NCBI GenBank assembly: GCA_002269645.1
Contig: NIVC01000230.1
Coordinates: 496,001-560,000 of the forward strand
DNA from: Macrostomum lignano
Lineage: Eukaryota
Reading direction: 5' to 3'
Length of the DNA: 64,000 nt
The notes beneath the pieces were generated by a model. That model worked only from the letters and a program-made list of their open reading frames with translations. It did not search any database and was not told where the DNA came from. Position numbers and translations under genes: made by a program. Below, one piece after another: positions 2,324 through 64,000 of this stretch (position 1 is its first letter; every line of letters begins with the position of its first letter).

Positions 2324-39172
<36,849 letters not shown>

Positions 39173-39769
39173 GTCGCCAAACTGACTCAATGCAATTTGA
39201 AAATTCCAAAAGGATTTTGGAAAACAAAACAATTTAATTCGGGTTTTAAAAAGCGCTTTGCTTTCAAAACTGTGAAGAATAACCTCAAGCATGATTTTAT
39301 AGAAACAGAAAACAGAAAAAAGTAAAAGTTTTCGGCTGGCACTGAAGAGATAACAGAAGTGGCAAGCAGCGATCATGAGACCACCTGCTGGGCTGCCCGC
39401 TGTTGATAAGACCTCTGCACCAGCTGCAGAAACCCTGGCACTCACCTGATAAAAGCCCTCCAATTTTTTATTAATCATAAGCCCAGGTATCAGAAGGCAT
39501 TTTGGATTTTCTTTAAAACACCAACGTTGAACGAGGGTTCACAAACGAGTCGCATGAACTCCAGATTATAAAAATTGTACAGCTTGTCTGTTTGATAATT
39601 ATTAATAAGAATTTATTCAACTGAAACAGGATTCAAAGTTAAATTGGATTTTAAGTTCGGATTCATAAAATGAGACTGAAATAAGCAGAAATATTCTACT
39701 GCAAGTAGACGCATTAAAACAAAGTTTATTTTGGCAGACAACTGCTAAGCAAAATAGTTTAGAATTATC

Positions 39770-41345
39770 AATAAACAGTATAGCACCACTAATAAACAGT
39801 TTAGCGTCATCAATAAACAATTCAGTTCCACCAATAAACAATTCAGCTCCACCAATAAACAATTTAGCTCCACTTAATAAACAGTTTAGCTCCACCAATA
39901 AACAATTCAGCTCCACCAATAAACAATTTAGCTCCACTAATAAACAGTTTAGCTCCACCAATAAACAATTTAGCTCGACCAATAAACAATTTAGCTCCAC
40001 TAATAAACAGTTTAGCTCCACCAATAAACAATTTAGCTCGACCAATAAACAGCTTAGCTCCACCAATAAACATTTTAGCGCCATCAATAAACAGTTTAAC
40101 TCCATTAATAAACAGTTTTGCATCATGGATAAACAGTTTATTTCTTATCAATAAGCAGGTTGCCTCTATAAATAAACAATTTTTCTCTATCAATAAACAG
40201 TTTAGCTCCACCAATAAACTGTTAAGCTCCATCAATAAACAGTTTAGCGCCATCAATAAACAGTTTATCGCCATCAATATACAGTTTAGCGTCATCAATA
40301 AACAGTTTAGCGCCATCAATATACAGTTTAGCGTCATCAATAAACAGTTTAGCGCCATCAATATACAGTTTAGCGTCATCAATAAACAGTTAAGCGCCAT
40401 CAATAAACAGTTTAGCGTCATCAATAAACAGTTTAGCGTCATCAATAAACAGTTAAGCGCCATCAATAAACAGTTTAGCGCCATCAATAAACAGTTTAGC
40501 GTCATCAATAAACAGTTTAGCGCCATCAATAAACAGTTTAGCGTCATCAATAAACAGTTAAGCGTCATCAATAAACAGTTTAGCGCCATCAATAAACAGT
40601 TTAGCGTCATCAATAAACAGTTAAGCGCCATCAATAAACAGTTTAGCGTCATCAATAAACAGTTTAGCGCCATCAATAAACAGTTTAGCGTCATCAATAA
40701 ACAGTTAAGCGCCATCAATAAACAGTTTAGCGTCATCAATAAACAGTTAAGCGCCATCAATAAACAGTTGAGCGCCATCAATAAACAGTTTAGCGTCATC
40801 AATAAACAGTTTAGCGTCATCAATAAACAGTTTAGCGCCATCAATAAACAGTTAAGCGCCATCAATAAACAGTTTAGCGCCATCAATAAACAGTTTAGCG
40901 TCATCAATAAACAGTTTAGCGCCATCAATAAACAGTTTAGCGCCATCAATAAACAGTTTAGCGCCATCAATAAACAGTTTAGCGCCATCAATAAACAGTT
41001 TAGCGCCATCAATAAACAGTTTAGCGTCATCAATAAACAGTTTAGCGCCATCAATAAACAGTTTAGCGCCATCAATAAACAGTTTAGCGCCATCAATAAA
41101 CAGTTAAGCGCCATCAATAAACAGTTAAGCGCCATCAATAAACAGTTTAGCGTCATCAATAAACAGTTTAGCGCCATCAATAAACAGTTTAGCGTCATCA
41201 ATAAACAGTTTAGCGCCATCAATAAACAGTTTAGCGTCATCAATAAACAGTTTAGCGTCATCAATAAACAGTTTAGCGCCATCAATAAACAGTTTAGCGT
41301 CATCAATAAACAGTTAAGCGCCATCAATAAACAGTTTAGCGCCAT
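39770..41345. repeat. 21-bp minisatellite (atcaataaacagtttagcgcc)
   Basis: About 75 copies; source of the spurious MALNCLL ORF. Confidence 0.97.
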
Positions 41346-41951
41346 CCATGCCCAGATGCTCCGTTGAGCGCCATGATCGATTCTGGAACAAAATTGCAAG
41401 CATTTCAGCTGCGTGCACATTGCTCATCACCCCAGGGTAAACAGCGGACTTATCCGGGTAATTATGGCATATTAGACTCATATTTGCCAACAGACTTTGC
41501 ACTATATTGGCAAATCAAGTTAGCAGTCGCACAGGCACAGATGGCTTAGCAGATGCCAAGCAAGAGATAGCTGAAAGCTTGTGGCTGCTAATTCTTTGAG
41601 AACCTATTTGTGGGGAGGCTGGTATGCCCGAGAGTCAAGTGCCCTGGACCAGCGGCTTAACACATTTACGTGGGGCGGGAGTGTAACGAACTAACGAAAT
41701 AAAAAAGCACGCGTGAGGGGGGCACTCGAATTCTCGATTTTATTTATCCACCTGCCTCTCGTGCCCGGCTTAACACCCTCGCGCTGAGATTCGCACCTCA
41801 CGCGTCGAATTTCGGTTCGGAAAGTCTCGCTCACGTGGCCCTCCAAAAATGGCTTTCCATTTCTTCAGAGTCTGGAATCTTTTTCATTTATTTAAATTTA
41901 AGCACTATCTTTTGTCAGACCTCGTCTCAAGGCAATTTATGTCCCTTAACC

Positions 41952-42350
41952 TCTCTCTCTGTCTCTCTCCCTGTCTCTCTCCCTGTCTCTCTCCCTGTCT
42001 CTCTCCCTGTCTCTCTCCCTGTCTCTCTCCCTGTCTCTCTCCCTGTCTCTCTCTCTGTCTCTCTCCCTGTCTCTCTCCCTGTCTCTCTCCCTGTCTCTCT
42101 CCCTGTCTCTCTCCCTGTCTCTCTCCCTGTCTCTCTCCCTGTCTCTCTCTCTGTCTCTCTCCCTGTCTCTCTCCCTGTCTCTCTCCCTGTCTCTCTCCCT
42201 GTCTCTCTCCCTGTCTCTCTCCCTGTCTCGCTCCCTGTCTCTCTCCCTGTCTCTCTCCCTGTCTCGCTCCCTGTCTCTCTCCCTGTCTCGCTCCCTGTCT
42301 CTCTCCCTGTCTCTCTCCCTGTCTCTCTCCCTGTCTCTCTCCCTGTCTCT
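41952..42350. repeat. 12-bp minisatellite (ctgtctctctcc)
   Basis: About 33 copies. Confidence 0.97.
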
Positions 42351-43261
42351 CTTTTTCTATCACAATATATCAACTGACTTGTGCGCAATAAAAATCTGAT
42401 GCCCAAATTTCTAAGACAAATTCAAAGACCAGCATGATTCATTTTTCGCCTACAGGGTCGCGAGGGCCACCAGATGGAAGACCATCCGGGTTTTTGATCG
42501 GCTCCCATCGCCTCCTTTCCTCCTCTTATCCCCATCGAGGGGAATTTGACACCGGAGGGCGATCCTGGACCCGCCCAGCGCTAGCCGCATCCCGATTTTG
42601 AGAACCTGAGGCGGTGTGGAAGCCAAGTCAAGCGTCTCCTCGGTAGGGGGGGGGGGTCCGAAGCCCTCATCCAGCACCCCCGCCCGCGGGGAGGAGGAGG
42701 GGGCGGACGAAGACACGCGCGGGTTCCCCGTATTGAGGAAGAAGCCCGAGATCTTCGATATCGCGGTTCTCGAGGAGGCTGAGCGTTAGTGGCGCTCTGA
42801 GATGAGGCATGAAGGCCCATGGCAGAGTAATATTGTAGTGACGCAATGGCTGCAACTCAAGCGGAATAACTGCCCATGGCTGAGCTAAAATCCCCCTGTT
42901 ATTACAGGCTTAGAGACCCGCGGCTGCCAGGCCTGTGTGCGCTCACTGCGATACCCCCTGGCTTGCCCCCATCTGCTTTTTTCTCCTTTTTTCTAAGTAA
43001 ATCAAAGCAGAAGTTTATTCTCTATTCTACGAAATCGTAAAGATTTCTCAAACAGTGCGGACTGGAAGCCGAGCCTGTGTTCACCTAGAATTGATTACAG
43101 GTTGCGCTGGGAAGCACTGAAATATATCTCTGATGCCTATAAACGAGTATCTATATTGTGACGCGGTTCATGTTCATATTTCCAATATTTGTCTGCTTTG
43201 ATTGCATCTTTAATGCTTTGTCTCTTTAACCTTTTGCGGCATGCCTTCCCTCCTCATATTC

Positions 43262-47346: not shown

Positions 47347-48780
47347 ATGTGCAGCCGCATTGCTGGAGATCGTCCGCTTGGCATTCGCGTCTCGCCAAGC
47401 TCCGTTAGAAGCATTGCTTCTAGTAGCAATAGCAGCAATTTTTCATCTGCCAGCAAGCTGACTGCTCTATTGTTTCCAAGGCGCCTTCAGCGAAGAAGTA
47501 GCGGCGGCTGCGAAGTCTCGTCATCCGATGGCGGCGGTAGTTGCAGCAATAGTAGCGGCTTCCATTTCGGCAGGGCGCTGCGTGACCAGCCGCAGACAGT
47601 CGTGGCCGGAGTGGGCCCGGTGCCAAGCCTGCTGGCCGCCAGCTGCCGCTTCCTGTCCTCGGAGGCGGCGCAGTCAGCCGAGGGCCTGTTCCGGGTGGAG
47701 GGCGCCCGGCCGCGGCTGCTGCTGCTGCGCGCCAGGCTGGACGTCGACCGGAGCTGCGACATCCCGGGTGACACGCCGCCGCAGGACGTTTGTTCCACGT
47801 TGAAGGCCTGGCTAAGGCAGCTGCCGCGCCCGCTGCTGCCGGCTGCAACCGCTGAGGCTTTGGCCGGCGCTGCAACGACGGCTGGCGAAGACCGCAACGG
47901 CGACGCTCAGCAGCGACTGTCGGCCCTCAGGGCGGTGGCGGCGGCGAATCTCGGCGGCGACGGCGGCTGCCGGGCCAGAGCGCTGCGCCTGCTGTGCCTG
48001 CTGCTGCACCGGCTGGCCGCTGCTGGTTTCCATGGCAACCGGATGGACTCGGCCAGTCTGGCCACCTGCCTCGGGCCCTGCCTGTACGGCGCAGCGACTG
48101 CCGACTCTGCCGAGACCGCCGCTCGTCTCAACCGCGGCGTCGCCCTCCTCATCCGTTCCGCCCCGGACATCCCGGATGCAGCTGCCGCCGTCGACGATGA
48201 CAGTCCAGTCCCTGATCCAACGCCGATCAAGTCCTTGCAGCCTCAGCAGCACCGAAGGCGAAGTACCGGCAGCGGCGGCGGCAGCGGCGGCTTCCGAGCT
48301 GCGGTCAGTCGCGTCGTCTCCCGCCTCAGCCGCAGTCGCAGCCGCGGTCGCAGCCGCAGCCCGTCAGGAGGATGCAGTCCCGCTGAGGATGCAGTCAGCT
48401 CGGCAGTCGTCGCCGAAGTCGCGGCCGCTTGTCTTCGACGTCGTCGTCATCACCGACTCAGCGCCGGCGGCGGCGGCATTCAATCGACAGTTCTCGACGG
48501 CGTCCGTTCGAAATGCGCCCGACGTCGGAGCAGCTTCGCCAGCTCGCCGCATCCGGACTTTCGGCGGCCGAGGCGACCGCTGCCGACACCGACGCCGCCG
48601 CCGCCACCGCCGCCGCCTCCAGCGATGGTGCCGCTGCTATCTTCGGCAGCCACGATGTCGCTGTCCGCTTCGGCATCGACAGCCTCGTTGTGGCAGCAGC
48701 CATCGAGGAGAACAGTGCGAGCCTCCGGTCCGGTGAAGGCCGTCCGATTGGGCTGTCCGAAAGTGGCCGAACTCAATTGA
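47347..48780 (+). CDS. ARHGAP11A: Intronless Rho GTPase-activating protein, ARHGAP11A-like, 477 aa
   Basis: FG..L...P..V...G.VPS.L...C, EGLFR (arginine finger), PPQDVCSTLKAWLRQLPRPLLP and NRMDSASLATCLGPCL align by eye with the ARHGAP11 GAP domain. AATAAA at 49084. Confidence 0.85.
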   Translation: MCSRIAGDRPLGIRVSPSSVRSIASSSNSSNFSSASKLTALLFPRRLQRRSSGGCEVSSSDGGGSCSNSSGFHFGRALRDQPQTVVAGVGPVPSLLAASCRFLSSEAAQSAEGLFRVEGARPRLLLLRARLDVDRSCDIPGDTPPQDVCSTLKAWLRQLPRPLLPAATAEALAGAATTAGEDRNGDAQQRLSALRAVAAANLGGDGGCRARALRLLCLLLHRLAAAGFHGNRMDSASLATCLGPCLYGAATADSAETAARLNRGVALLIRSAPDIPDAAAAVDDDSPVPDPTPIKSLQPQQHRRRSTGSGGGSGGFRAAVSRVVSRLSRSRSRGRSRSPSGGCSPAEDAVSSAVVAEVAAACLRRRRHHRLSAGGGGIQSTVLDGVRSKCARRRSSFASSPHPDFRRPRRPLPTPTPPPPPPPPPAMVPLLSSAATMSLSASASTASLWQQPSRRTVRASGPVKAVRLGCPKVAELN

Positions 48781-49660
48781 GAAGTTTTAATAACTAACAA
48801 ATTTTGGCTTAATATTTTAATATTCCCATTCTTTTTACACATGAGAGCCGAAAACATCTGCAGATCTAGCATTGACTAGATGGAGAAGTGTCTTGTAGCA
48901 GCAGCAAGTGTCTTGTGTAAATTGTTTCTTGCTTGCGCCATCTGCAATTTCGAATATCCTCTGTCTGCTCTCAAGCTCAAATTTTCTTCTTCATTATTCA
49001 TGCTGTTCCTGTTGTTCTTGTACAGATATGAGATGTATTTAATTGAATTGCTTGGAGATAAATTTGTATACCTGTTTGTATGTAATAAAATTTTATAAAT
49101 AAAATTTATTTCAATGCGTTTTATTGTTGATATTGTTCATCATAAAATTTCATTCATAAAAAACTTCTTCACAGTTTTTGCTTACTTTATCAAGGATAAA
49201 GAAAGACAGAACTACCAAAACGCTACTTATAGTAGAACGTAGAGCTTTGGAAGTAAAATTTTGGCAAAACAAAGTTGTTGACTTAGAGTTGTTTACCGAG
49301 ATTTGTTTCGATAACACTTGTTTATTATAGAAAAGTTTTCACCAACTTGGTTGTTGGAAGCACTCGAGTACGAGTAATAGTGGTTTGAATAAGCATGCAT
49401 GTAAAAGTAAAACAGTAATTTCATAAAATTAGAAACAACGCACTTAAAAAACAGACCGTAAACTTGCTGCCGCTGCACAAAGTAAAAAGTAAAAAAGCAA
49501 AGGAAAGTAAAAATTAGATAAATAAAGGTTCTAGATATTAGGGATTCACTGGGTGCGCTTTCTTCTGAACGTGCTAGAATTAGTTCTACGAGACAGGTGG
49601 GTAAGGTGGTCCTAAGAGAGTTAGATGGTTCCAGGTTAGCTGAAGTGTTTACATGGTTTC

Positions 49661-51112
49661 TAGAGTGTTTCCATGAGTACTAGAGTGTTTCCATGAGTAC
49701 TAGAGTGTTTCCATGAGTACTAGAGTGTTTCCATGAGTGCTAGAGTGTTTCCATGAGTACTAGAGTGTTTCCATGAGTACTAGAGTGTTTCCATGAGTAC
49801 TAGAGTGTTTCCATGAGTACTAGAGTGTTTCCATGAGTACTAGAGTGTTTCCATGAGTACTAGAGTGTTTCCATGAGTACTAGAGTGTTTCCATGAGTGC
49901 TAGAGTGTTTCCATGAGTACTAGAGTGTTTCCATGAGTGCTAGAGTGTTTCCATGAGTACTAGAGTGTTTCCATGAGTACTAGAGTGTTTCCATGAGTAC
50001 TAGAGTGTTTCCATGAGTACTAGAGTGTTTCCATGAGTACTAGAGTGTTTCCATGAGTACTAGAGTGTTTCCATGAGTACTAGAGTGTTTCCATGAGTAC
50101 TAGAGTGTTTCCATGAGTACTAGAGTGTTTCCATGAGTACTAGAGTGTTTCCATGAGTACTAGAGTGTTTCCATGAGTACTAGAGTGTTTCCATGAGTAC
50201 TAGAGTGTTTCCATGAGTACTAGAGTGTTTCCATGAGTACTAGAGTGTTTCCATGAGTACTAGAGTGTTTCCATGAGTACTAGAGTGTTTCCATGAGTAC
50301 TAGAGTGTTTCCATGAGTACTAGAGTGTTTCCATGAGTACTAGAGTGTTTCCATGAGTACTAGAGTGTTTCCATGAGTACTAGAGTGTTTCCATGAGTAC
50401 TAGAGTGTTTCCATGAGTACTAGAGTGTTTCCATGAGTACTAGAGTGTTTCCATGAGTACTAGAGTGTTTCCATGAGTACTAGAGTGTTTCCATGAGTAC
50501 TAGAGTGTTTCCATGAGTACTAGAGTGTTTCCATGAGTACTAGAGTGTTTCCATGAGTACTAGAGTGTTTCCATGAGTACTAGAGTGTTTCCATGAGTAC
50601 TAGAGTGTTTCCATGAGTACTAGAGTGTTTCCATGAGTACTAGAGTGTTTCCAAGGATTCTAAAATGTTTTCATGAGTACTAGAGTGTTTCCATTAGCAC
50701 TCCTAGAGTGTTTCTGTGAGTACTAGAGTGTTTCCATGAGTACTCCTAGAGTGTTTCCATGAGTACTAGAGTGTTTCCATGAGTACTCCTAGAGTGTTTC
50801 CATGAGTACTAGAGTGTTTCCATGAGTACTAGAGTGTTTCCATGAGTACTAGAGTGTTTTCATGAGTACTAGAGTGGTTCCAAGAATTCTAAAATGTTTT
50901 CATGAGTACTAGAGTGTTTCCATTAGCACTCCTAGAGTGTTTCTGTGAGTACTAGAGTGTTTCCATGAGTACTCCTAGAGTGTTTCCATGAGTACTAGAG
51001 TGTTTCCATGAGTACTCCTAGAGTGTTTCCATGAGTACTAGAGTGTTTCCATGAGTACTAGAGTGTTTCCATGAGTACTAGAGTGTTTTCATGAGTACTA
51101 GAGTGGTTCCAA
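49661..51112. repeat. 20-bp satellite (tagagtgtttccatgagtac) with a 229-bp higher-order duplication at its right end
   Basis: About 50 near-identical units, then two copies of a variant block starting at 50651 and 50880. Confidence 0.97.
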
Positions 51113-51384
51113 GAGCGTTTCTATGCATGCTATATATTTTTTTGGTGTAGTTTAACGGTTTAAAGTGTGATAGGGTGTTCAACTGATGTCAGGATGTTAC
51201 AGATGGTATACCTGGTCAGGGATTTTGGAGCAGAGTTATGGAGGTTTGAGTTAGGGCGATCTATGCAGAAATAAATTTTCTCGCTTGCCAATCAATAGTA
51301 ATCAGTCTTGCAGACAAATTAAGTGTTATAGTTAGTTATGATGGTTAAATTGTGTTCATCCAAGTCAGAAGCAGTACGTCACTG

Positions 51385-53524
51385 TTATACTGTGTTATAC
51401 TGAACTTGCAGCACTGAGAAGCAGGCATCCAACTTATTCCGTTCTTTCTCCAGTTCTTCAGCATGTCTGTCCAGTTCAAGATAGGTGCTACAGTTTCCTT
51501 TCAGTTGGTTTTTGATATCTTCAACTGAGCTGGCAGTTGGCCAGGAATGATTCCGGTGATCTACGATCTGTGTGGCTGCATGAGACACGGTAGCTCCCGT
51601 TCTGTCAGACAGCTGGTCAGAGTACTTCTCCAATGTCTCCGCTAGTTTGCCATGCACATTCGGCAGATGGGTATTGTAAGTTCTCAGGCAGCCGATGAAG
51701 CTGTCTAGATTGCTTTTCAGTTCTTCTACTGGGCTGAAATAATAATATTTTTCGCAAAATAAGCGAGATTTAAAATGAAAGCTACTAGCAATCAAGCGCG
51801 TATTACACAATAGGCAGGTGTGGCACCGTCAGGTAACCGACAGGTGTGATACTAGACTGCATTCACAAATGACACTTGTGACACAGGGTTGCATGCACTC
51901 AAAAAATGGAAACATTTTATCACCGATATGCGCCGAAGTAGGAAAAACAATTTGTCGATAAGTATTGAAAATGTACCACTTACAAGAGCACAGAATATGC
52001 ACAGAACACTCAATCACGCATTTCAAGCAATTTCTTGCACAAGAGTTGCATTCTGCACTAGTTAATCTCATTGTGAAGAAAAACTAAGTAGGCCGAACGG
52101 CACTTTGCAAGTTTTTTTGCAATATCGTATACGCTACTATTACTGAGTTGTCCGGTCTAAAAATTCAAAAAAGATATCTAATTTTCCCTTTGTTTTGTTT
52201 TGTTTTTAGGCTTATTTTCTGTGCTAGTTCCGCTAAATGAAATGCTATAGCTTTTTTTGTTAAAGTCCACCCAGGCTCTCTATTTAAAAATAAAAGAGAA
52301 CTGGGAGTTTTTCATAAATTTCTATACATTTAATTCATACTACTGAGAAGGTTCGCTAGATAAGTAGGCTGTGCGAAGTTTAATTCTTTTTGTAGTAGGA
52401 ACCATTATTGGACATTCTGTGTATATTCTGCAGTAAGAACGACAACAGAGTAAATACGCTCGCATGAATGTCGGATGAGGTGAAATAGACTAGTCATCAG
52501 CAAATCTGTGATCGGAGGCAACCTGCACCTATAAAAGTGGACGCATTGGATACATCGCAAGACTTTACAAACGCCAATATTGTGAGCTACATGTATTACA
52601 ATGAAGCCTTACCGTCCCTGGGTTAGCAGCCTCGTTGCAGTCGAATGAAGATTCGCTGAAGAAGCTGCTATATTATTCTCAACGCGCTGTATGGCTCTAG
52701 CGTCCGAAGTTTCTAGGCGGCTGGATTCTATCAGACGTTGGGCCACTTCGCGACACTGCTGAGTCTCGTTTTTCTCTTAAGTGAGTGCCTCCGACACGTG
52801 CAGTTTAATGTTGGTGATGTCATTGCCTAGCTCAGATGAGTGGTGTTCCAAACTTCCGGCTGCCATCAAGCGGGTCACCGTGCCATCAGTATCGTTCAGC
52901 ATCTGAATCCGTCTGATCTTGCGATCCAGATCGGTCCTTAGATCAGTCAGTTCTCCGATGAGATAATCCAAAACGGCTCCGCTTTTTTTGATGCGGTTAA
53001 GATGATTGTGCAAACTTGTAACAGAGAAATGTTCATTCTGGTCTGCCAATGTATCGGGATGTGATTGAAGCCGAGTTCGAATTGTGATGCATTTGTCCAG
53101 CAGATGTAACTGAATAGCATTTAATTTTCCCAGGGACAATCTGAACGTGTGGAGTGCTTCAATAGCCAGGTCAAGCTGACTACGCAGCTCATCGAATGCA
53201 TCGATTCTAAAACATCCTTTGTTCTGACGGCAGTACCAGAATACTGTCGACTAAATTCATCGAGCTCAGAGGAATAGCAAATTCCTCGATCTTTTTGGAC
53301 CAGTGTCGTACGTTAGACCACTCGTCATTCGCTTGGCGTCGTTCTTGAGTGGTTAAACCAGGAGATCTAGACAGAATATAGGCGACAGACTCACACAGTT
53401 GGGTCTCTTGCTCCACCAGTCCATAAACATCAGAGAGCTTTTTGAAAAGCTGCAAGCTAATCCGGCTAGCATCAGACTCAGCAGCGGCTACCAGCTGAGC
53501 TGGAGTGTCCACCTCGGATGCCAT
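51385..53524 (-). pseudogene. Two-exon (or more) coiled-coil/helical-bundle protein gene, weakly BAR-like; one frameshift and one in-frame TAA
   Basis: ORF 53207-53524 shifts at ATGTTTTAGA into the frame of ORF 52777-53139. The frame continues past TAA (52777) for 55 codons to donor CG|GTAAGG (52612), which joins acceptor atttcag at 51734 in phase into ORF 51385-51810. TATATAAG at 53669-53676 (minus). Confidence 0.55.
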
Positions 53525-54792
53525 TGCTTTGCTTTTAGAAATACTTGCTTAAGCTATACAGGTTTCTTCACAAAATGACATACAACAAAGTTAACTGTTA
53601 GCTATAGCTACAAGTAATAGGAATTACGAGTTTTTTGTATGTGACAATCAAAACAATAATTTCTATTGCTTATATAGATTGCTTAGTTAAATAAGGAACA
53701 AAATACTTGTACGTTCGAGTTAGCTACACACGAAACAAGTGTATTGCATATGTACGTTTTTCACAGCAGTCATTATTTCACGAACTTATTTCTCGCTAAT
53801 GCAAAGTAAAAGGAGGTGAATAGATATTACTGTACAAGCATAAAAGGCGGGAGTGCAGTCACGTGATGAAATGCGTACTTACATATAGGGGTTAACTGTT
53901 CATGGGGATCGAAACAACTATGGAACAATGGCCAAAACTAATAGTACTCTTTAGCTTCTTGAGGTTAGCTACAACTGCTTCTACATGTATTCAAGAGACT
54001 ATATTTCAGGAAAGTTTTATATTTTCTCTATGTACACTATATAGTGGCATGGCTAGCGTAAACAGGGTTCGGCAATAGCAGTCAGCACAAAGAAAGAAGA
54101 GGCCAAGCACTTTACTTTTAGTGGCGCCAAAAAGAATTTCAGGATTAAACGCACCATGTATCGCATAGTGTGCATAGTGTACAGTGTTCTATATAAGATC
54201 ATCAGTACAATACATCATGAGACACTGGTACAACATACTTCACTCGTTGATATGGAGTGACCTTCCCCTAAGTGAAGAAAATTTTACTGAAAATTGTACA
54301 TGTAGATCTACGCTTTAGCTGTGCAACAAGAAACGGAACAGCCAGAAAATTCTGATGGCCTGTCCGTGGAAAAACCGCGCTTACTAGGAACTTGCCACAA
54401 CTGCGAGTAAGAATTGACATTAATGCATTACATATTATAGCCCATTTCATACTTTATTTTGAGTTCAGCTGTTGAATGATATTAAAATGTATCGATCCAG
54501 TGATAGAGTGATCGATGTATCGATTTGAAATGAGTTAACAACAGCTATACCAGCCCACAGCACAACAACAGCAGTACTTTAAGGATTCTCTTATATACAA
54601 GATTCCATTATCTGTCCCCTTCAACCATATGAAAGAAACCAGTTTAAGGCAGAGAAAAAGCCAAAATTTTTCACTTGAGGGGCTCCAGCACCAGACACCA
54701 TTGCAGTTTAAAAAAAATTTCGAGTTGTTTTTGCATTTCATCTTAAGCGTATAGCTGGTACTGTTACAATTCAAGTGCAGTCTGTATGCAAA

Positions 54793-54878
54793 GGAAACTC
54801 CGTGAAATTTCCACGAAAAATCCGTGAAAAACCCAGAAATTTATTTATTTTGTGATTTAGTAGTGCGTCCTATAAAAG
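54793..54878 (+). promoter_or_regulatory. Promoter of the LRAT/PLAAT-like gene: cluster of CC(G/A)(T/C)G(G/A)AAA-type motifs plus TATA box
   Basis: ggaaactccgtgaaatttccacgaaaaatccgtgaaaa at 54793-54830; TATAAAAG at 54871. Confidence 0.55.
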
Positions 54879-54941
54879 TTTCTTTACTAATCTTGTTTTC
54901 TCTTGTTGCGCTCGTTGCTTTTGCCACAGACCGTAGAAAAA

Positions 54942-55541
54942 ATGTGCGTCGGATTCACAAACGGATATACTGACTACAAACCATGCAACTACGAAGAGGC
55001 GCTGAAAAATTTAAAACCAGGATCCAGTGTAAGTTTCAACAGAGGCAGTGTATATCACTTCGCAATTTACATAGGAATGGAAGATAAACCAGACGGTACA
55101 AGCTTTCCTGCTATCTGGCATTACTACGGTCCTGTTGATAACATGAGAATTCGAATAGACGACTTTCGCGACGTTATTCAAGGCTGCACTATACGCGTTT
55201 ATCGCTGCAACTGTTCCGAATCAAAAAGGTCTGATGTCATACGAAGATGTAAGAGTAGACTCGGAGAAGGCGGCTACAATGCAGTGTCGAACAATTGTGA
55301 GCACATTGTCCGCTGGGCTATAAATGGTGAAAGCGTCAGCTTTCAATCGCGCGCTACATTTATTCCGGTCACAATGCCATTTCAACTGGTTCGCCTATCT
55401 TTTGGGTCTCTATTTGGGGGAGGTTCCTCTGGATCTTCGTCAAGCTCTGGATCCTCTGGATCTTCGTCACGCTCTGGATCTTCTGGATCTTCGTCACGCT
55501 CTGGATCCTCTGGATCTTCGTCAAGCTGTGTATGCTCTTGA
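54942..55541 (+). CDS. LRAT/PLAAT (HRASLS, NlpC/P60 permuted) family acyltransferase/phospholipase with Ser-Gly tail and C-terminal CVCS, 199 aa
   Basis: KPG, YHFAIYIG (His), IWHY (His), SRLGEGGYNAVSNNCEHIVRW (catalytic Cys at 55296). First ATG at 54942; the track ORF starts earlier at a TTG. Confidence 0.9.
   Translation: MCVGFTNGYTDYKPCNYEEALKNLKPGSSVSFNRGSVYHFAIYIGMEDKPDGTSFPAIWHYYGPVDNMRIRIDDFRDVIQGCTIRVYRCNCSESKRSDVIRRCKSRLGEGGYNAVSNNCEHIVRWAINGESVSFQSRATFIPVTMPFQLVRLSFGSLFGGGSSGSSSSSGSSGSSSRSGSSGSSSRSGSSGSSSSCVCS
55425..55526 (+). repeat. Coding 27-bp repeat producing the (SGSSGSSSR/S)n linker
   Basis: Three to four copies of tctggatcttcgtcaagctctggatcc. Confidence 0.85.
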
Positions 55542-55919
55542 TGATCTGTTCAAGCCTGGAGTAAAGGAATCTAAGAAGAGCACAGTTTGCACCAAATTAA
55601 AAACAAGTCTTTTATCTCTTGCTCATTAAATATTTACATTTACGCTATATTTTCTTAATTTCTACTTTCAGTAGAGCATATCGAACATTGTTGTTTTTGC
55701 CTATGAAATTTTTTTCCCGAATTTATTATTCATCGATATTTTCCACGAATACAATATAATATTATATGTACATATGCCGTTGTGCAGTAGCTAGTTGTAA
55801 AGTTTTTCCTCTCTATTGTCTTTACCCGCTTCGTCTTATAACTCCAAGAGCTTGGTCGGTGCTGTTTCAAATTTTACTGTCATCATGGTGCTCCCAGACT
55901 TCGCAACAGCTAACCCCCA

Positions 55920-56072
55920 GTTACAACAGCTCTGCCGCAAAAATTACAGCAGAAGGGAACTGATGGGGGTTGTTTTGCTACGTTATTTGCATATCAAATA
56001 GGCCGTCAAAGTCTCTCCAGACATGAACCCCATCGAGAATGTCTGAGACTTCGTAAAATGGAGAGTTCAGAA
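55920..56072 (+). mobile_element. Decayed Tc1/mariner transposase fragment
   Basis: Reads (W)PSKS-PDMNPIENV*DFVKWRVQ, matching the conserved WP..SPDLNPIEN.W DDE motif, with indels and a TGG>TGA stop. Confidence 0.55.
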
Positions 56073-56915
56073 GGGAGCATCGCAGAATTGCCCTATAAGA
56101 CTTAATAGTTCATCACCGGCTGTTGATTAGGATGCCACTGCGAGTGATTACACTTTTGCATGCTCACAGTTGCTGCATTAAAATAGAAATTGAATAGAAA
56201 GAAAACTTAAAATAGCATTACAAGATAATTTCTATTCTAACTACGCAAGTTTCTCTTATAATACGGCTATTATTAATCAGTATTCATTAATATTTTATTT
56301 ACATATAGAAAGACATTTCACCTTTTAAATTGAAATAGTTTCTTTGCGAAAGTACGCATCTGATTTTCATTACTAAACCAATTCATGGTTGAAAATGTGA
56401 AGTGAGTTTCTCGAACCGTAATTTTTGTTAAAATAAACTTGACATGGGTACGTAGTAGCGACTAATAAACACATTTTAGAAAGTTAATCTGAAGCTATAA
56501 AAACCGGTTTGTAAGCTTTTTATTGATTCTTCGTTGTTGTTTCTCACTGTTTATGATGACGAGTATAATATAACAGTAATAATAACAAATTAATCTGCGA
56601 CACAGATAGACATTTAGCAAGGCTTGGTAAAAGCTTCTCAAAGGAGGCATGCAGAAAAAGCCTTAGACGATATACAAGCAATGTCCAAAGCAGCAGATTC
56701 TACAGAGACGTTCCACATGCTTGGTATTCAGAGTCGGCTTCAGCTGCTCTGATAATTGCTTTTATTATTTTGCACAACTAAAGACAGCTACTTTACAGTC
56801 TCAGAGAATATTTGCTCCAATAAATAAAATATGGATTTAGGAGCATAGTCGCTGTGTACTTTCGTTAATTTAGTCTGAACTTTCTGCGTGCTCGCTACGT
56901 ATATGATATAGCCAG

Positions 56916-57299
56916 TCAGCACCGCAGTCGCAAAATCTGTTCAATGACACCGTGAAAAACCCAGCAAATGGTCACGATAACTTTGAAGACCTGCCAGATG
57001 CAGCAGAAAAGGCAGCAGCAGACCTGACGGGCTGTCAGCTTTTCATCTGATGATTCTTCTGGTTGCAGTGGTTCCTGCTGCAGTTGCTGCTCCTGCGGTT
57101 GCTGCTCTTCCGGATGTTGCTTGTGCGGTTGCTGCTCCTGTGGTTGCTGCTCCTGCGGTTGCTGCTCCTGTGGTTGCTGCTCCTGTGGTTGCTGCTCCTG
57201 TGGTTGCTGCTCCTGTGGTTGCTGCTCCAGCGGTTGCTGCTCCTGCGGTTGCTGCTCCATCTCAGACCAAGTACATAGAGTTTTCTCACCAATTGACAT
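56916..57299 (-). CDS. Small Gln/Pro/Glu-repeat protein with Cys-rich hydrophobic C-terminus (CYSTM-like), ~127 aa
   Basis: (EQQPQ)n from a 15-bp repeat, then VCCCLFCCIWQVFKVIVTICWVFHGVIEQILRLRC*. The track ATG at 57404 overlaps a TATAAA, so a downstream ATG (57299 or 57260) is more likely. Confidence 0.6.
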   Translation of the reverse strand: MSIGEKTLCTWSEMEQQPQEQQPLEQQPQEQQPQEQQPQEQQPQEQQPQEQQPQEQQPHKQHPEEQQPQEQQLQQEPLQPEESSDEKLTARQVCCCLFCCIWQVFKVIVTICWVFHGVIEQILRLRC

Positions 57300-57835
57300 T
57301 GTGGAGCCTCTGTTCTTAGTCGAATAATTTTCAGCTAAATTTGAGCCCGATCTTTCGAGAAAGTTGACAACTTTGCTAATTTTTTCCACAAAAATAGCTG
57401 GCATTTATAGCGACAAGAATTGCAGACTTGTGTCAAAAAAGTCTCTTAATAAAAGATCTTCGTGAAGCAAAAACAGCAAAAGTCTTCCTGATATGCATGA
57501 AAATGTTTAATCCTAAATGTTGGAGAGACAGCTAATTGCGTCTGTTGTCTGCTGTTACTAATTGTCTACAAAGGACCTTGCATATATGATTTCTTCAGTT
57601 AGAACTTATGGGGTGCACATGTCTTGCCGATTTTGTCAAAGATCTTCTTCGATTTCTTCACGCAAACATAAAAGCATTCTTCTGCATCAGAACAGTTTGT
57701 TGAGTCTTTCTACTGCCGAATAGACGCGAACAACTAGAGTAAAAGTTAAATGAGGCGAAGTTTCTATCGCTTTACGAAATCTTTCAGCGGACTTATGTCG
57801 CCTTAAACGGATTTTTTTCAACTTATCTCAAGGGG

Positions 57836-58945
57836 ATGTCGAATGAAAGGGGACACCACTTTCGTTTTTATGGTCATACCTGCCTTTTGCCTGACAATCT
57901 CGGTGTATTCTCGCGCCGCCCTTCGCTTTCAGGTCGCCTCCGCTCCGGAGACGGGCCGCCCAAGAAGGCGGTCTCCGCCGGTCTGCTCTGCCGCCTCGCC
58001 CTCGCAGACAGCTTGTGGAAATCCCACAGCAGCCAATTCAAGGCCTGGCGTGCGTTATGTGATCAGGTGGGCATCGGTCCGATCACAGCCAGCGAGAGCG
58101 ACCTGTGCCAGTACGTCGTCCACCTGGTGCAATCACGGATCAGCGCCTCCTCAGCCCTGTGGTCCTACATCAATGCCGTCTCGGTGCTCCACCAGCTGGC
58201 CGGCTCGCCAGACCCAGCTCGAGGGGCGGCACGGCTGCAGTTCCTTTTGAGCGGCGCTCGGCGCTTCCTGGGGCTTCAGACCAAACAGGCGACGGCGCTC
58301 GAGCCTGCTCACCTGCGGCGGCTTGCGGGCGACCCTGTGCCCCGAACCTGTGGTCTGCATTCTGCGCCGCCTTGCTGGTGGCCTGGTGGGGGCTGATCCG
58401 AGTTGGCGACCTGCTGCCGGACTCTGGAGCTGCCGAGCTGCGCTCTAGCCATCTGTGCTATTCCGGCTCTGGGCTGGTGCCCTGTCGGTGCGGTGTTGCG
58501 CCACCTGCGCCAGAATCGCATCGGCGCCACAGTCCCGTTGTTCTCCTACCTCGTGGGCTCGCTTAGGCAGCGTTTGAAGCAGATGAGGGACCTCGCTTCT
58601 GCGGCAGGCACTGCGTAACTGCGGTTTCAACCCGTCCGCCTTCTCCAGCCACAGCCTGCGGTGCGGTCGGGCCAGCTTTGCCCTGCAGGCGGGGGTGGCC
58701 GCCTTGCCTGATATCATGGCCCTGGATGGCTGGCGCTCTGACTGTGTAAAGCGCTACTTCAGTGACGGTGTTTCTGTGGCTCGCAAATCTCGGGCGGTTG
58801 GTCAGATGCTGCTTTCCCTTTAATGCTTCGTTGCGCTGTTGCCGCCTCTTGCTCGCCAAACGCAGCTTTGTTTGCCTCTTTGCCTGTTTATCCTCATGGT
58901 TTAATTGAGCGAACACATTCACAGTTTAGACCGGATGAAGAGCAT
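57836..58945 (+). mobile_element. Decayed tyrosine-recombinase-encoding element (Ngaro/DIRS-type YR, alternatively Crypton), truncated
   Basis: N-terminal SAM-like region (FKAWRALC...DLCQYVVHL...SYINAVSVLH), then catalytic LIRVGDLL (R, 58399), SHSLRCG (HxxR, 58650), DGWRSD and KRY (Tyr), stop at 58821. At least three frameshifts; GC-rich relative to flanks; no RT visible. Confidence 0.8.
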
Positions 58946-59583
58946 CGCTTGCTCGAGTTTTTCGAGATTTGCAATCACAGTTCGAGATGGGGCTTTAACC
59001 GAATTTTAAGAGACTCAATATACTTGGCAGCGCATGCCCAATTGTCCTCACCGTCACACACTCCAACCGCTGTGATGATTCACACACATGTGCTGCTGAT
59101 TAGTGCGCTGTCACCGAAACATTATTGTTCACTGTGAAACTCGAGATTGTTACGGCAGCGGTGAAGAGACGATTTCTGCTTGCAGCTGAAAGATTTACTT
59201 TTGTTCATTTCGATCTCACTATTGCTAGTAAGAGGGCTGAAAAAATTATCGGCATTCTTTTCATACGCACGGGTTTCCAGTTATTGTTTGTCACCATGGC
59301 AGAAGCACTACATCGGTTCACTGTACAGCCAGTGTCAATCACCAAGGCGTCTGGTAACAGACCGACGATACTAATATAAGTTAGCCGCGAAACCTTTCTA
59401 TCTCGGGGGAAACTGAGAATTTAGTTATTTATGACATAGCTACGAGCGGAACTAGCATCTTGCTACTAATAGCAGGACCTAAAAGTTTCCATACGTTATT
59501 GTAGCTTCCATTGTAGCTTTCTAAATTTCCAGTAAATGATAAGTAATTACAAGTATTAATGACATCTGTCCATCGCTACATAC

Positions 59584-59764
59584 CACACCCTCAATTACCC
59601 CAGCTAATGCTGGCACCCATTTTACAGCTGGGTTAACTGTAAAGCAATGCAGAGAGAGTTAACTGTCTTGCTCATGAACACAAATAGTTCCCAGTGGGTC
59701 GAGAATCGAACCCGCGACCTTCAAGTCGTGAGTTCGAAGCTCTAACCACTGAGATACAACCCCA
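59584..59764 (-). mobile_element. tRNA-derived SINE with CORE-like domain, copy 2
   Basis: Minus strand: A-box-like tatctcagtggttagagc and B-box GGTTCGATTCT, then gtgttcatgagcaagacagttaac...ctgtaaaatggg resembling the MIR CORE consensus. Homologous to 30747-30912. Confidence 0.78.
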
Positions 59765-60676
59765 AACGTAGAAGCTGGTACATCCGCACTTTCTATAAAT
59801 AACAAATATTCCTATTTAAGTCAAATAAATTTTCTCCCCTTTTCTTCGAACTTCCTTAACAAAATATTTCTACACATGAACTGCGTATTATGTATAGTTT
59901 AACTATTTGCTATATTAGTCTACTCAGCAAAATTGAAAATTCGCCACTCCGCCACTCTATGTGCCAGATAGCAATTTCTCCTGGACTATTCTGAACTAAA
60001 CGATGCGAGAAAACTGAGAGGTAGCTTTAATCCGTCCAACCCAGCTCCCAAATCGAAAAATTTCCAAGCTCTTTGTGGTTATCAATTTATTTTCTACTAT
60101 AAAATAGTCGGATTGCGAAACATCGTATTAAAAAATGATAATATAAAAAATTGACAAGTACAATTTGAAAGTTTCCACCCAAAACCAGTTCGCGAGGACT
60201 GAGATATGAGAGTGGTAGCTTTAATCCAACTCTTAGCCATTACTCTCAACTCTCTCCTCACCACCCTATGCCAGTGCAACTCGCATCATCACCCACAGTT
60301 GAGACGGGATCAGCAAGCGTGGTTGTGAATTGCGTCATTTGGAGAAAGTTTGGGAAAATTTGACTACTCGTTTCGAGGTGGACGCATTAACATGCTGCTT
60401 AGTTTGTATCAGACTGAAACATGCATTACTTTAATATTTTAAGTTTTGCTTCGAAATAAAGTATGGCAAGTTATTTATAGGAGCTATAACGCATTAAAAC
60501 TTTGTTATTGTGGAGAACTACTTTTGAGTAAAATTAAATGATGGAAGCAAGTTCTTACTTTCCTAAAAAGTATTCATTTAAATGGTAAATGGTAAATTGT
60601 TTTTCTAAAATACAAAGACTTATAAAAGTCTGAAAAGAAAGCAACGACTACGTCGACTAGCAAATTAAAATTGAAA

Positions 60677-60937
60677 TCAATTGCTACAATCTTTAAAAAT
60701 ATCTAGAAAGAACTGGCAGCACTCCATACAGCACATACAGAAGATCAAACAGTCGCAGGCATTTTCCCTTGCGTCACTGCGTTTATTGTCCGTACCAGCA
60801 CGGGTGATGTCTGTTGGAACTTCTGGCTCCTGCTCAAGCTGGCAGTGCTCCATGCAGCTACTCGTACTCACGTTGCTGCCCCCACCAGTACCAGCAGGGA
60901 CAATGTCTGTTGGAGCTTTGACTGTTGAATCCTGCAT
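60677..60937 (-). CDS. Small hydrophilic protein with Cys-rich C-terminal module (CYSTM-like), 86 aa
   Basis: Internal duplication (APTDIVPAGT / VPTDITRAGT), tail ACDCLIFCMCCMECCQFFLDIFKDCSN*; TATAAAA on minus at ~61040-61046. Confidence 0.55.
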   Translation of the reverse strand: MQDSTVKAPTDIVPAGTGGGSNVSTSSCMEHCQLEQEPEVPTDITRAGTDNKRSDARENACDCLIFCMCCMECCQFFLDIFKDCSN

Positions 60938-61595
60938 CGGCAGTGCGTTGGAATTGCGTTGGTTATCACTTCTCTGACCTGCTGGATGGTTGCTACTGTC
61001 TCTGTCTGACGCTTGTTTTCGTTCACTTTTTGCTTAGTATTTTATATTCCTCTCATTGAATAATTATTGCACGTTGACAAGCATATTGGTATTTTTAGCA
61101 GTGACGCAAGAGACATAAAGTGACATAAAGTTGTACTTAATGGGGACCGTAGCCTAGAGCGCTCTTACTTGCCAGCGGCACATGCATTAATTTGGGGGCT
61201 AAATTGGAATTTCGGCTTGGCTCTGCTCGTGCAATTAACGCTCTTTAAGGCCAACCCAAGGCTCCATGAAGCTTGTACATGGCTTATGCTAAATAAAGTT
61301 AGGGCCGCTGTACACTCCTGTGTGAGTGTGTGCCTGCGCAGTGGAGTCGGCGGAATGTGTGCAGTAATGCCTCTCGCCGGTTGTGCGACAATGTCGCTTA
61401 AAGTGCGCCTGGGTGCACGCAGCCCTCTGAATCTAGTTGACGATGAGAAGGATTGACTTATTTGATTGGAGTTTTAATTGCTGTATAGGGCAGAAGTGTA
61501 AAGTGAATTCAACTCATTTCTTGGACTATATCGTGTTTGTTTCCCTGCATCTCGGATTTATCTGAACTTTCCTCTACTCGGAATCTACTGACTGT

Positions 61596-62185
61596 CAGGG
61601 GCGTCGCCACCGGGGGGACAGGGGGGACATGTCCCCCCTGTAAGAGATATGGAGGGACATGCCAATGCTTTGTCCCCCCCCCAACCACACCCCACCTGCG
61701 GCGCCAAAATGAGTGCCTGCGGCGCTAAAATGAGTGTCTGCGGCGCCAAAATAAGTGTCTGCGGCGCCAAAATGAGTGCCCGCGGCGTCAAAATGAGTGC
61801 CTGCGGCGCTAAAATGAGTGTCTGCGGCGCCAAAATAAGTGTCTGCGGCGCCAAAATGAGTGCCCGCGGCGTCAAAATGAGTGCCTGCGGCGCCAAAATG
61901 AGTGCCTGCGGCGCCAAAATGAGTGCCTGCGGCGCTAAAATGAGTGCCTGCGGCGCTAAAATGAGTGCCTGCGGCGCCAAAATGAGTGCCTGCGGCGTCA
62001 AAATGAGTGCCTGCGGCGCCAAAATGAGTGCTTGCGGCACCAATTAAATGAGTGCCTGCGGCGCCAAAATGAGCGCTGGCAACTCTGATTCTGAATAATG
62101 TACATGTAGGAATTTAGTCATGCACATGTACATGGAGAATTCTTGGCTTTGTCCCCCCACCATAAAATCCCTGGCGTTGCCTCTG
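61596..62185. mobile_element. Non-autonomous hAT-type MITE carrying a 21-bp minisatellite
   Basis: Imperfect 14-bp TIRs (caggggcgtcgcca / tggcgttgcctctg), perfect 8-bp TSD ctgactgt at 61588-61595 and 62186-62193. Confidence 0.85.
61695..62075. repeat. 21-bp minisatellite (gagtgcctgcggcgccaaaat) inside the MITE
   Basis: About 18 copies. Confidence 0.95.
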
Positions 62186-63019
62186 CTGACTGTGTTTTTA
62201 CTTATTAGGATTTTACTAAATGGGATGTTACTGACAGTGATTTTACTATACGGGAATTTAATAAATCGGGTTTTACTGACTGGGACTTATTGATAATGGT
62301 CTCATTTTACTGGCCCAGTTGGAATCAAAGTCAGAATTAAATATATTGCTGTCTTATCGGCCTCTGGTTGCATTTTAAACTTGAGAATCAGCCTAAGACA
62401 CGACACATTCTTGCTTCAATGGAAATTCGGAAGCTCAAAAGGTGGAATGTATACAAGCCAGTCAATTCAGTGCTAAAATATTCAAAACTTTTCCTGTCTC
62501 TATGAAGCTATGCCAGTAAAAGCAACTTTTCTCGGACCTCGGCCACTTATGAAACGCGAGAGAATCCGGAACAAAATGGTGCCTGGCAGAGTCTTCCTGA
62601 AGATTTTTTGTGGCGCCTCATTTTGGGTCTCTGCCTTGCTGCGTGCTCGCAGAAGACAAACTTGTTACAGACAGAGCTTCCGCATTGTCAGCAGTTCATC
62701 TGGGCTGCCTTTCGTTCTGTGAGGGCCAATCCTGCAGTCCGAGGCCCGAAACTGACTGCCAGAGGGTGGTGCTGTTCCAGGCGCTGGTGGAGACCACTCA
62801 GACCCGGATGCTGACGGACTCGTTCGAGATAGACGAAATAGATTCGAAATAGACGTCCTGTAGTTTCTTAGAGCTTGAAAACTGAAAAATATAGGTCAAG
62901 TAAACTAAATCCAAAAACGATATACAACTAGACATATATACTTCGTCCACCATAAAATCGCAAACATAACTGTACTTAATAGTACTGTACTGTACTTTAC
63001 TGCATCTCGGAAGACATCT

Positions 63020-63114
63020 GGGAAAACTCCGCGGAAAAGCCGTGGAGTTTCCGCGGTATTTCCATGGCATTACCTTAGCTCCATGTTCCTACATCAATAA
63101 TCTGAATATATAAG
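63020..63114 (+). promoter_or_regulatory. Promoter of the APOL-like gene: CC(G/A)(C/T)GG motif cluster with AAA/TTT flanks plus TATA box
   Basis: gggaaaactccgcggaaaagccgtggagtttccgcggtatttccatgg at 63020-63067; TATATAAG at ~63107; acceptor ttccattgcag at 63337 just before the ATG. Confidence 0.55.
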
Positions 63115-63346
63115 TCTGAATGACTTCGGCTGCATAGCACATACTTTGGCATCATTCACAGCTATATTTACACACCCTAATTCAGGTTTTCAAGTCTTCG
63201 AAATACCGGTATAGCTGAGTAAGTGTTCATAACTAATTCAACTGGCTGCTTTAATTTAGCAACTTTTTTATTTTCCTATAAACTCGTTTCTATAATGCAA
63301 TTAAGAACGTTTTTTCAATGTAAATTTTCCATTGCAGTTTTGAGAA

Positions 63347-64000
63347 ATGGCTCAAGGAGAAAATGATTCCCCGTACAACGGTATCCTTGAGTGGCTAATT
63401 CCAGCCACCCAAAATGCTAAATTGATAGCTTCAGATTCAAGCAAATTTGCTTGTGAACTGCGTTGTACGGAAAGAAGCGCAAAAAACGAGCTGCTTTCTC
63501 TCTCAGATTGCAGCCCTTACAGCGTGGACTTTAGTAAATGCAGGTTTCTCGACTCGATGGACGGTGCGAAATCTTCTGGAGATGAGCTGAAAAGTAAATG
63601 CGATGCACTCTGTAAAGAATGGAAAAAATTTGCCGATGATTACGCTAAATCAAGCAAAGAGAAAAATGAATTAAGGTCCGCCGAATTAGACAAGCTGTTG
63701 GAAGATATGAATAAACTTTTGGAAAAATGTGCCGCTTGCAGACAGCAATATTCTGCGACTCAAGAGAAATTAAACACCGCCATCAATGACTGCTCCCTCT
63801 TAGTTGAAGAGCTATCAACGGAAGCGGACTGCAAGAGAAAAGAGGAATCTGCCAGAAAACTTAAAGGCTACGTTGCAGCACTCGTTAGCTTTGGTGCAGC
63901 TGTGGCGACTGGTGGCGCGGCTACTCCTGTAGCGATGTTCGCCGCTGGAAGCCTGACAACAGTCTCCTTCGGCACTGCTGCTTGGACCATGGTTACGTCC
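63347..64000 (+). CDS. Partial ORF (218 codons, runs off the window): Cys-containing coiled coil followed by a Gly/Ala-rich hydrophobic hairpin; apolipoprotein-L-like / alpha-pore-former-like
   Basis: Hand translation MAQGENDSPYNGILEWLIP...ELDKLLEDMNKLLEKCAACRQQ...RKLKGYVAALVSFGAAVATGGAATPVAMFAAGSLTTVSFGTAAWTMVTS with no stop. Absent from the ORF track because it is incomplete. Confidence 0.75.
   Translation, partial: MAQGENDSPYNGILEWLIPATQNAKLIASDSSKFACELRCTERSAKNELLSLSDCSPYSVDFSKCRFLDSMDGAKSSGDELKSKCDALCKEWKKFADDYAKSSKEKNELRSAELDKLLEDMNKLLEKCAACRQQYSATQEKLNTAINDCSLLVEELSTEADCKRKEESARKLKGYVAALVSFGAAVATGGAATPVAMFAAGSLTTVSFGTAAWTMVTS

Follow-up and report, generated by a model that had tools for sequence, protein, structure and literature searches.

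Divergent gene pairs for a cysteine-tailed mini-protein and a helical-hairpin protein recur in Macrostomum lignano and, at one locus, lie beside a PLAAT-like gene

A 64-kb stretch of the Macrostomum lignano genome (scaffold NIVC01000230.1:496001-560000), referred to here as the window, was analyzed with emphasis on positions 51385-64000. In the original prediction, this region was read as a single module of five small, intron-poor genes, namely a coiled-coil gene, a PLAAT-like gene, two CYSTM-like genes (CYS1 and CYS2) and an APOL-like gene. All five open reading frames (ORFs) were located in the ORF listing and in a three-frame map, and they do contain few introns; the coiled-coil gene, however, is not intact. 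When linkage was checked in paralogous loci, the five-gene module was not recovered. The conserved unit is a divergently transcribed pair, in which a minus-strand gene for a mini-protein with a Cys-rich tail (the Cys-tail gene) is followed by a plus-strand gene for a helical-hairpin (HH) protein, the product originally termed APOL-like. This is the most defensible new point of the analysis. The reading that we prefer, to which a probability of roughly 0.45 is assigned, is an array of divergent Cys-tail/HH pairs with a singleton PLAAT-like gene, two lineage-specific extras and a putative membrane mechanism.

Six Cys-tail/HH pairs were found in four loci, with the partners separated by 1.5-8 kb. 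In the window, the pair comprises CYS2 (60677-60937, minus strand; 86 aa) and HH-A (63347-64000, plus strand), of which the first 218 codons lie within the window. The complete HH-A gene was read from an overlapping segment of the same scaffold (L004; GCA_002269645.1, NIVC01000230.1:555651-576526), positions 1-4350 of which match window 59651-64000 with 100% identity. There, HH-A occupies positions 3697-4674 as a single, intact coding exon of 325 aa, ending at window-equivalent position 64324. A 5'-untranslated region (5'UTR) intron precedes it at 63219-63337 (GTAAGT...TTGCAG), and the same layout is present upstream of the paralog HH-B. The divergent intergenic region between CYS2 and HH-A contains a 21-nt satellite of 17.9 copies (61695-62073).

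Beyond the window, the array continues in L004 with CYS3 (8256-8525, minus strand) and HH-B (10001-10876, plus strand; paralog P0004), such that two diverged subtypes, CYS2/HH-A and CYS3/HH-B, are adjacent. HH-A and HH-B share 58% identity, and between CYS2 and the 89-aa CYS3 genes the relationship is distant (tblastn, E = 4e-4), with a barely alignable identity of ∼22-37%. Further on in L004 lie a gene for an 83-aa single-pass membrane protein (13125-13376, minus strand) and a C2H2 zinc-finger gene (14363-19331), and the order CYS3, HH-B, 83-aa gene, C2H2 gene is repeated on NIVC01000555.1 (three further loci, including L002 and L003). Copies of the PLAAT-like gene, CYS1 and the coiled-coil ORFs were absent from the paralogous DNA compared, which for the near-identical copy L001 covered NIVC01000555.1 from position 155640 onward.

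The ratio of nonsynonymous to synonymous substitution rates (dN/dS) was determined for the paralogs. Values of 0.6-1.35 were obtained for HH, in agreement with the fast evolution that had been predicted, and the highest was that of HH-A against its L001 counterpart (1.35). CYS3 is constrained (0.15), while CYS2, which shares 93% identity with its L001 counterpart in the codon alignment, is intermediate (0.63). Two HH copies are frameshifted (L001 16878-17751 and L002 1593-2502). P0002 (L001 10001-10828), a copy of HH-A, has an in-frame deletion of most of the hairpin; its frame is open and a gene model is present.

Close relatives of HH-A were found in M. lignano only, these being the paralogs P0001-P0004 at 55-84% identity, and a profile search of 1.84e9 representative proteins returned just nine matches for the family. 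The layout extends to the remote relatives, as does an almost invariant Cys-x3-Tyr motif. Six cysteines are invariant across the aligned Macrostomum paralogs and are kept in HH-A. A model produced by AlphaFold (AF2) from an alignment of 11 sequences, with a predicted local distance difference test score (pLDDT) of 80.6 and a predicted template modeling score (pTM) of 0.71, contains helices at residues 10-50, 57-101, 110-176 and 217-292 and a Gly/Ala-rich unstructured segment at 174-210. The position of this Gly/Ala/Val/Thr-rich stretch of ∼35-45 residues, between helices 3 and 4, is conserved in 11/11 relatives. Its hydropathy of 1.44 is under the usual transmembrane threshold and suits a segment that inserts conditionally better than a helix that spans the membrane permanently. 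Two of the relatives, P0005 and P0006, end in the CaaX boxes CVCSVL and CVCAIL, respectively, which resemble the CVCS terminus of the PLAAT-like protein; these boxes argue that the proteins act on membranes from the cytosolic side. P0006, a 1171-aa chimera with an aminotransferase-like start, is probably a gene-model fusion.

In Foldseek searches, the best whole-length structural matches of the HH model were ClyA monomers (1qoy, TM-score 0.53; 4pho_B, TM-scores 0.55/0.58; E = 0.06-0.14), and AhlB, a component of a tripartite toxin, was among the best matches of the first HH model. This likeness of the HH model to the ClyA monomer is weak, and none of the matches has a significant E-value. Like the ClyA family (ClyA/HlyE, AhlB and Hbl/Nhe), HH is modeled as an elongated helical bundle of ∼300 aa; its hydrophobic hairpin links helices 3 and 4 at one end of the bundle, in the place taken by the beta-tongue in ClyA. 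Unlike ClyA, it is cytosolic and eukaryotic and has six conserved cysteines, it has no sequence or profile similarity to that family, and its last helix forms a single long coiled coil that does not fold back; pore formation by HH is a prediction.

The label APOL-like did not survive as a statement of family membership. PF05461 was absent, even at permissive E-values, among the Pfam matches listed for the window protein and 11 relatives, and APOL chains were missing from the sequence, profile and fold matches of HH in the PDB. In APOL proteins, the hairpin is thought to insert into membranes and is accompanied by a C-terminal coiled coil or leucine zipper, and the family is fast-evolving and tandemly duplicated. 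HH resembles it in architecture alone, with helical domains, a hydrophobic hairpin and a C-terminal coiled coil, and in its fast evolution and tandem duplication. On the strength of the model, HH is therefore likened to, and not identified as, a ClyA- or APOL-type membrane inserter, hence the name helical-hairpin.

A resemblance to the plant DUF677/AT14A (UPF0496) proteins, which are described as membrane-bound and stress-related (PMC13471261), was also detected. P0003 reaches the Pfam DUF677 profile (PF05055) exactly at the gathering cut-off (29.1 bits, E = 6e-7), in a collinear alignment (residues 97-305 against profile positions 105-322/336) that spans the hairpin and its flanking helices. 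The other paralogs differ in this respect: P0004 scored 15.7 bits, below the cut-off, and P0001 and the window HH-A were not among the DUF677 matches listed. Coiled-coil and Gly/Ala hairpin composition may drive the P0003 match.

The Cys-tail proteins CYS1, CYS2 and CYS3 are small, and their last 26-40 residues contain 6-8 Cys. CYS2 ends in the Cys-rich tail CDCLIFCMCCMECCQFFLDIF. CYS1 (56916-57299, minus strand; 127 aa) consists of ∼12 repeats of QQPQE followed by the Cys-rich hydrophobic tail VCCCLFCCIWQVFKVIVTICWVF, and its repeat stretch is built on a 15-nt minisatellite (12.1 copies, 57078-57258). Hydropathy of at least 1.6 was reached in CYS1 (residues 100-116, a strongly hydrophobic tail), CYS2 (residues 69-72) and CYS3 alike. 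The two window proteins had been labeled CYSTM-like. They do share with CYSTM (PF12734) a small size, a polar or repeat-rich N terminus and a Cys-rich hydrophobic C-terminal segment, but neither the full proteins nor the tails matched PF12734 at E ≤ 10, and their Cys-rich segments, unlike that of CYSTM, contain charged residues. The sole weak Pfam match was to the Cys-rich domain of MDFI (E = 0.0013), short of the cut-off. CYS1 had no homolog and no copy among the paralogous loci compared, and together with the disrupted coiled-coil ORF it constitutes the two lineage-specific extras. Homologs were detectable for only two of the five genes. The in-frame minisatellites of CYS1 (15 nt) and of the PLAAT-like gene (27 nt) are probably length-polymorphic among individuals.

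The PLAAT-like gene (54942-55541, plus strand) is a single exon encoding 199 aa, and its predicted family held up well. Residues 23-131 match the LRAT domain PF04970 (E = 3.2e-13; 50.5 bits against a cut-off of 24.3) over profile positions 2-119/120, and the closest solved structures found with phmmer were PLAAT4/RARRES3 chains (E = 0.003-0.006). YHFAIYIG aligns with HWALYIG of PLAAT4, and NNCEHIV aligns with RNCEHFV, such that the His box and the catalytic Cys motif are both kept. The gene is a genuine LRAT/PLAAT-family member and a singleton. As in the PLAAT/HRASLS proteins (e.g. human PLAAT4/RARRES3), the product is small and cytosolic, with a putative C-terminal membrane-targeting element. 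It differs from PLAAT4 in that identity is just ∼20-25% and close homologs are lacking: a homolog search with the Ser-rich tail removed gave only one weak match (E = 2e-4), and exact protein look-ups of the PLAAT-like protein and of CYS1 found no record. A possible further difference concerns the second His of the catalytic triad, where VIH of PLAAT4 aligns to MED, placing Asp at this position in a loop whose alignment is uncertain; another His follows downstream, in AIWHYYG.

The C-terminal region of the PLAAT-like protein is also distinct. Vertebrate PLAAT1-5 have a C-terminal transmembrane anchor, whereas the window protein has no transmembrane segment (largest 19-residue hydropathy 1.24); instead, a 27-nt tandem repeat (4.4 copies, 55425-55542) encodes a Ser/Gly-rich linker that leads into a terminal CVCS. 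In our reading, these four residues have the form of a CaaX prenylation box. A 79-aa ORF that ends in KYCCCCAVGWYSCC (54535-54774, minus strand) is divergent to the PLAAT-like gene and mimics the layout of a Cys-tail gene and its effector. As a gene candidate it was rejected; it had no homolog and is probably a chance ORF.

The coiled-coil gene was predicted as an intact gene, and what the region contains are ORFs (51385-53524, minus strand) that give ∼406 aa when joined. The exons run from 53524 to 52613 and from 51733 to 51388, with the stop codon at 51387-51385, and they are separated by a phase-consistent GT-AG intron (52612 to 51734), the sole coding intron read in the region. In the three-frame map, the frame is broken twice, by the need for a +1 frameshift at ∼53210-53250 and by an in-frame TAA at 52779-52777. 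Rescue of the frame by splicing was considered and rejected, in that the frame-restoring GT...AG introns measured just 13-22 nt in our reading. The joined translation had no homologs among 5.8e9 proteins and no PDB match, and it contains no hydrophobic segment (largest 19-residue hydropathy 0.83). Kinship with HH was rejected as well (hhalign against the HH profile, probability 1%). The coiled-coil ORFs are probably a pseudogene or a very young gene. M. lignano genes contain an average of 4.9 introns (PMC5730564), and the intron-poor genes of the region are therefore atypical of this genome.

The predicted TATA box at each gene was borne out. The window contains 25 matches to TATAWAWR, against 12.95 ± 4.5 expected, and 14 of them fall within the 12.6-kb region. 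Correctly oriented boxes lie ∼64-240 nt upstream of the ATG in four genes: the coiled-coil gene (TATATAAG, 53669-53676, minus strand, 145 nt upstream), the PLAAT-like gene (TATAAAAG, 54871-54878, plus strand, 64 nt upstream), CYS1 (TATAAATG, 57402-57409, minus strand, ∼100 nt upstream of the ATG at 57299) and HH-A (TATATAAG, 63107-63114, plus strand, with the 5'UTR intron downstream of it). For the fifth gene, CYS2, the box TATAAAAT was read upstream at ∼61041.

Arrays of an 11-bp repeat lie upstream of two of these boxes, on the plus strand. The array of the PLAAT-like gene (54792-54840) reads GGAAACTCCGTG / AAATTTCCACG / AAAAATCCGTG / AAAAACCCAG, and that of HH-A (63021-63070) reads GGAAAACTCCGCG / GAAAAGCCGTG / GAGTTTCCGCG / GTATTTCCATG. 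The two are similar (consensus GAAAWNTCCGYG) and are placed 40-90 nt upstream of the TATA box; the HH-A array is present too in the paralog promoters of L001 and L002. All four window matches to the related motif YCGTGAAAW fall within 53775-56958, three of them in promoters, including the copy at 53775-53783 in the coiled-coil promoter. The 11-bp motif may be a shared transcription-factor site, and it is treated as a lead only because the pattern was derived after the data had been seen. No k-mer of at least 10 nt was common to all eight promoters.

The Mlig_3_7 annotation rests on transcript evidence (PMC5730564), and gene models are present for HH-B, CYS2, CYS3 and P0001-P0003. The HH family is therefore transcribed. 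CYS2 is the sole gene of the region with a GenBank model. In a search for expression data, the identifiers Mlig013564, Mlig013860 and Mlig004740 gave no match in the full texts and supplements of the M. lignano papers covered.

As had been anticipated, most products of the region appear to be membrane-associated, and also cytosolic: they have a hydrophobic hairpin, a CaaX box or a Cys-rich tail, and the sequences read contain no signal peptide. The CYS2/HH-A pair opens a series of divergent pairs arranged in tandem, for which we infer the following mechanism. In the 86-89-aa Cys-tail partner, the Cys-packed hydrophobic C terminus would be S-acylated and would anchor the protein in a membrane. 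The HH partner, a protein of ∼300 aa with four predicted long helices, a moderately hydrophobic Gly/Ala-rich hairpin and a charged C-terminal coiled coil, would be amphitropic: in a soluble storage form, the bundle would shield the hairpin. The hairpin would then enter the membrane and the protein would oligomerize, thereby permeabilizing or reshaping the membrane. ClyA-type and APOL-type proteins work by such a soluble-to-inserted switch. The Cys-tail protein could either mark the target membrane or restrain HH. The PLAAT-like protein would probably act on membrane phospholipids, and its attachment to the membrane would probably depend on prenylation at the C-terminal CaaX box, not on the transmembrane helix of the vertebrate PLAATs.

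A pore-former/partner or toxin-antidote reading of the Cys-tail/HH pair is no more than possible. Its fully specified version, a flatworm two-component system in which a ClyA-topology inserter is combined with a lipid-anchored, Cys-rich targeting or neutralizing mini-protein and which serves either as a cell-autonomous immune effector alongside a prenylated PLAAT-type lipase or as a toxin and its antidote, is decidedly unlikely.

Several observations weigh against the array of pairs with a membrane mechanism. The hairpin segment is modeled with pLDDT < 50. None of the Foldseek matches of HH reached E ≤ 1e-3, and long helical bundles match one another easily. Among the Pfam and PDB matches listed, no sequence profile joins HH to ClyA, Hbl/Nhe or ApoL; Hbl L1 did no better than E = 0.043 in the PDB profile search. 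The pairing of Cys-tail and HH genes could be inherited simply through segmental duplication, and the locus of a remote relative (L006) has no Cys-tail neighbor. The dN/dS values near 1, the two frameshifted copies and the hairpin-deleted P0002 also fit the decay of redundant copies. Finally, GenBank contains no transcript-based model for the window HH-A, the PLAAT-like gene or CYS1, nor for the coiled-coil ORFs, an absence that fits silent inducible genes or non-function alike.

That last point bears on two rival explanations. Were much of the region non-functional, the coiled-coil ORFs, CYS1, HH-A and perhaps the PLAAT-like gene would represent duplicates in decay, or ORFs that are young or due to chance, within a gap rich in transposable elements (TEs). 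The doubly broken coiled-coil frame, the minisatellites underlying CYS1 and the tail of the PLAAT-like protein, the HH-A ratio above 1 and the TE relics and satellites around the genes are all consistent with this, as are the missing models. It is nonetheless an improbable account of the whole, given that the PLAAT-like ORF retains a full LRAT domain and its catalytic motifs far over the Pfam cut-off, that HH-A retains a 325-codon ORF with its six invariant cysteines and the hairpin, and that a correctly placed TATA box accompanies each ORF. The same silence at baseline, seen in four of the five genes, would be expected if all five formed one co-regulated, inducible island for cell-autonomous defence, directed at the membranes of intracellular or engulfed microbes. 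TATA-type promoters with proper placement and orientation at each gene, the similar 11-bp arrays of the PLAAT-like and HH promoters, the YCGTGAAAW match in the coiled-coil promoter, the lack of signal peptides combined with membrane-association features in most products, and the fast evolution of HH would agree with such an island. The proposal is unlikely to be correct, however: five-gene linkage was seen in none of the paralogous loci compared, where only the Cys-tail/HH pair recurs, one member is a disrupted orphan, ApoL and CYSTM family matches are lacking, the promoter motif is post hoc, no motif is common to all five promoters, and the absent gene models fit non-function equally.

Two further explanations concern the pair itself. 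HH might be a structural or membrane-shaping protein of ordinary cell biology, comparable with BAR/IMD or plant DUF677/AT14A proteins and using its hairpin as a wedge. Several HH members gave sub-threshold Pfam IMD matches (best E = 3.9e-5; 23.7 bits against a cut-off of 26.2), an F-BAR domain was among the top Foldseek rows at a low TM-score, and the DUF677 score of P0003, with that of P0004 below the cut-off, points the same way. TM-scores to BAR domains were only ∼0.3, compared with 0.5-0.58 to ClyA, and dN/dS near 1 with copy turnover would be unusual for a housekeeping scaffold, and the family is nearly absent outside Macrostomum-like sequences; this explanation is accordingly doubtful. 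Alternatively, the pairs might be selfish toxin-antidote or poison-immunity elements that spread by duplication in the genome of a hermaphrodite, with HH as the membrane poison and the tethered mini-protein as its neutralizer. Tight divergent linkage kept through an old duplication (as gauged by the HH-A/HH-B and CYS2/CYS3 identities), many copies of which some are degenerate, lineage restriction of the family, and HH evolving at near-neutral dN/dS while CYS3 is constrained would all be in keeping with this. Toxicity, parent-of-origin effects and presence/absence polymorphism are all unsupported, though, and the copy number is explicable by the neopolyploid, duplication-rich nature of the M. 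lignano genome (PMC5730564), which makes selfish pairs highly unlikely.

If HH does insert into membranes, the family would be an uncharacterized one in animals, built like ClyA-type toxins or vertebrate APOLs and provided with a dedicated partner gene. It would then offer a tractable model of how a latent membrane-damaging protein is kept harmless in eukaryotes, since transgenesis and RNA interference are available in M. lignano. A PLAAT-type enzyme with a CaaX box in place of a transmembrane anchor would represent an independent solution to membrane targeting in the PLAAT family. Should the genes be decaying duplicates, the locus would be an ordinary case of gene birth and death, set in a genome that is neopolyploid and rich in repeats.

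Genes are sparse and repeats abundant in the region, which has a GC content of ∼0.40 and is more AT-rich than the remaining window. Four TE relics had been predicted within it, and they were verified only in part. Two repeats were seen: the 21-nt satellite described above and a dispersed, short interspersed element (SINE)-like repeat at 59584-59750, which has a second copy at window 30747-30906 (78% identity) and another at L001 148-311. Rfam and tRNA scans of the region, this repeat included, gave no match. A GC-rich block at ∼57.8-59.1 kb (57836-58822, plus strand; GC 0.51 against ∼0.40 in the flanks) contains broken ORFs that overlap in several frames, and we read it, from an HSLRCGR...VKRYF motif, as probably the relic of a tyrosine-recombinase-type mobile element; because Pfam returned nothing significant for the TE-like ORFs, those of this block included, the recombinase identity is unconfirmed. 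A DDE_3 trace near window position 56000 was weak (Pfam, E = 0.059).

Elsewhere in the window, a 20-nt satellite (AGTGTTTCCATGAGTACTAG, 49644-51115, 72.7 copies) abuts the region, and long tandem arrays of coding appearance occur also at 39617-41420 and 41835-42406. A GC-rich, single-exon ORF of 477 aa at 47347-48780 (plus strand) contains a RhoGAP domain (E = 6e-18). Positions 1-36000 are occupied by a giant minus-strand gene with tandem MAM domains and LDLa modules, in which exon ORFs reach up to 3064 aa and the introns contain (GTCT)n-type microsatellites.

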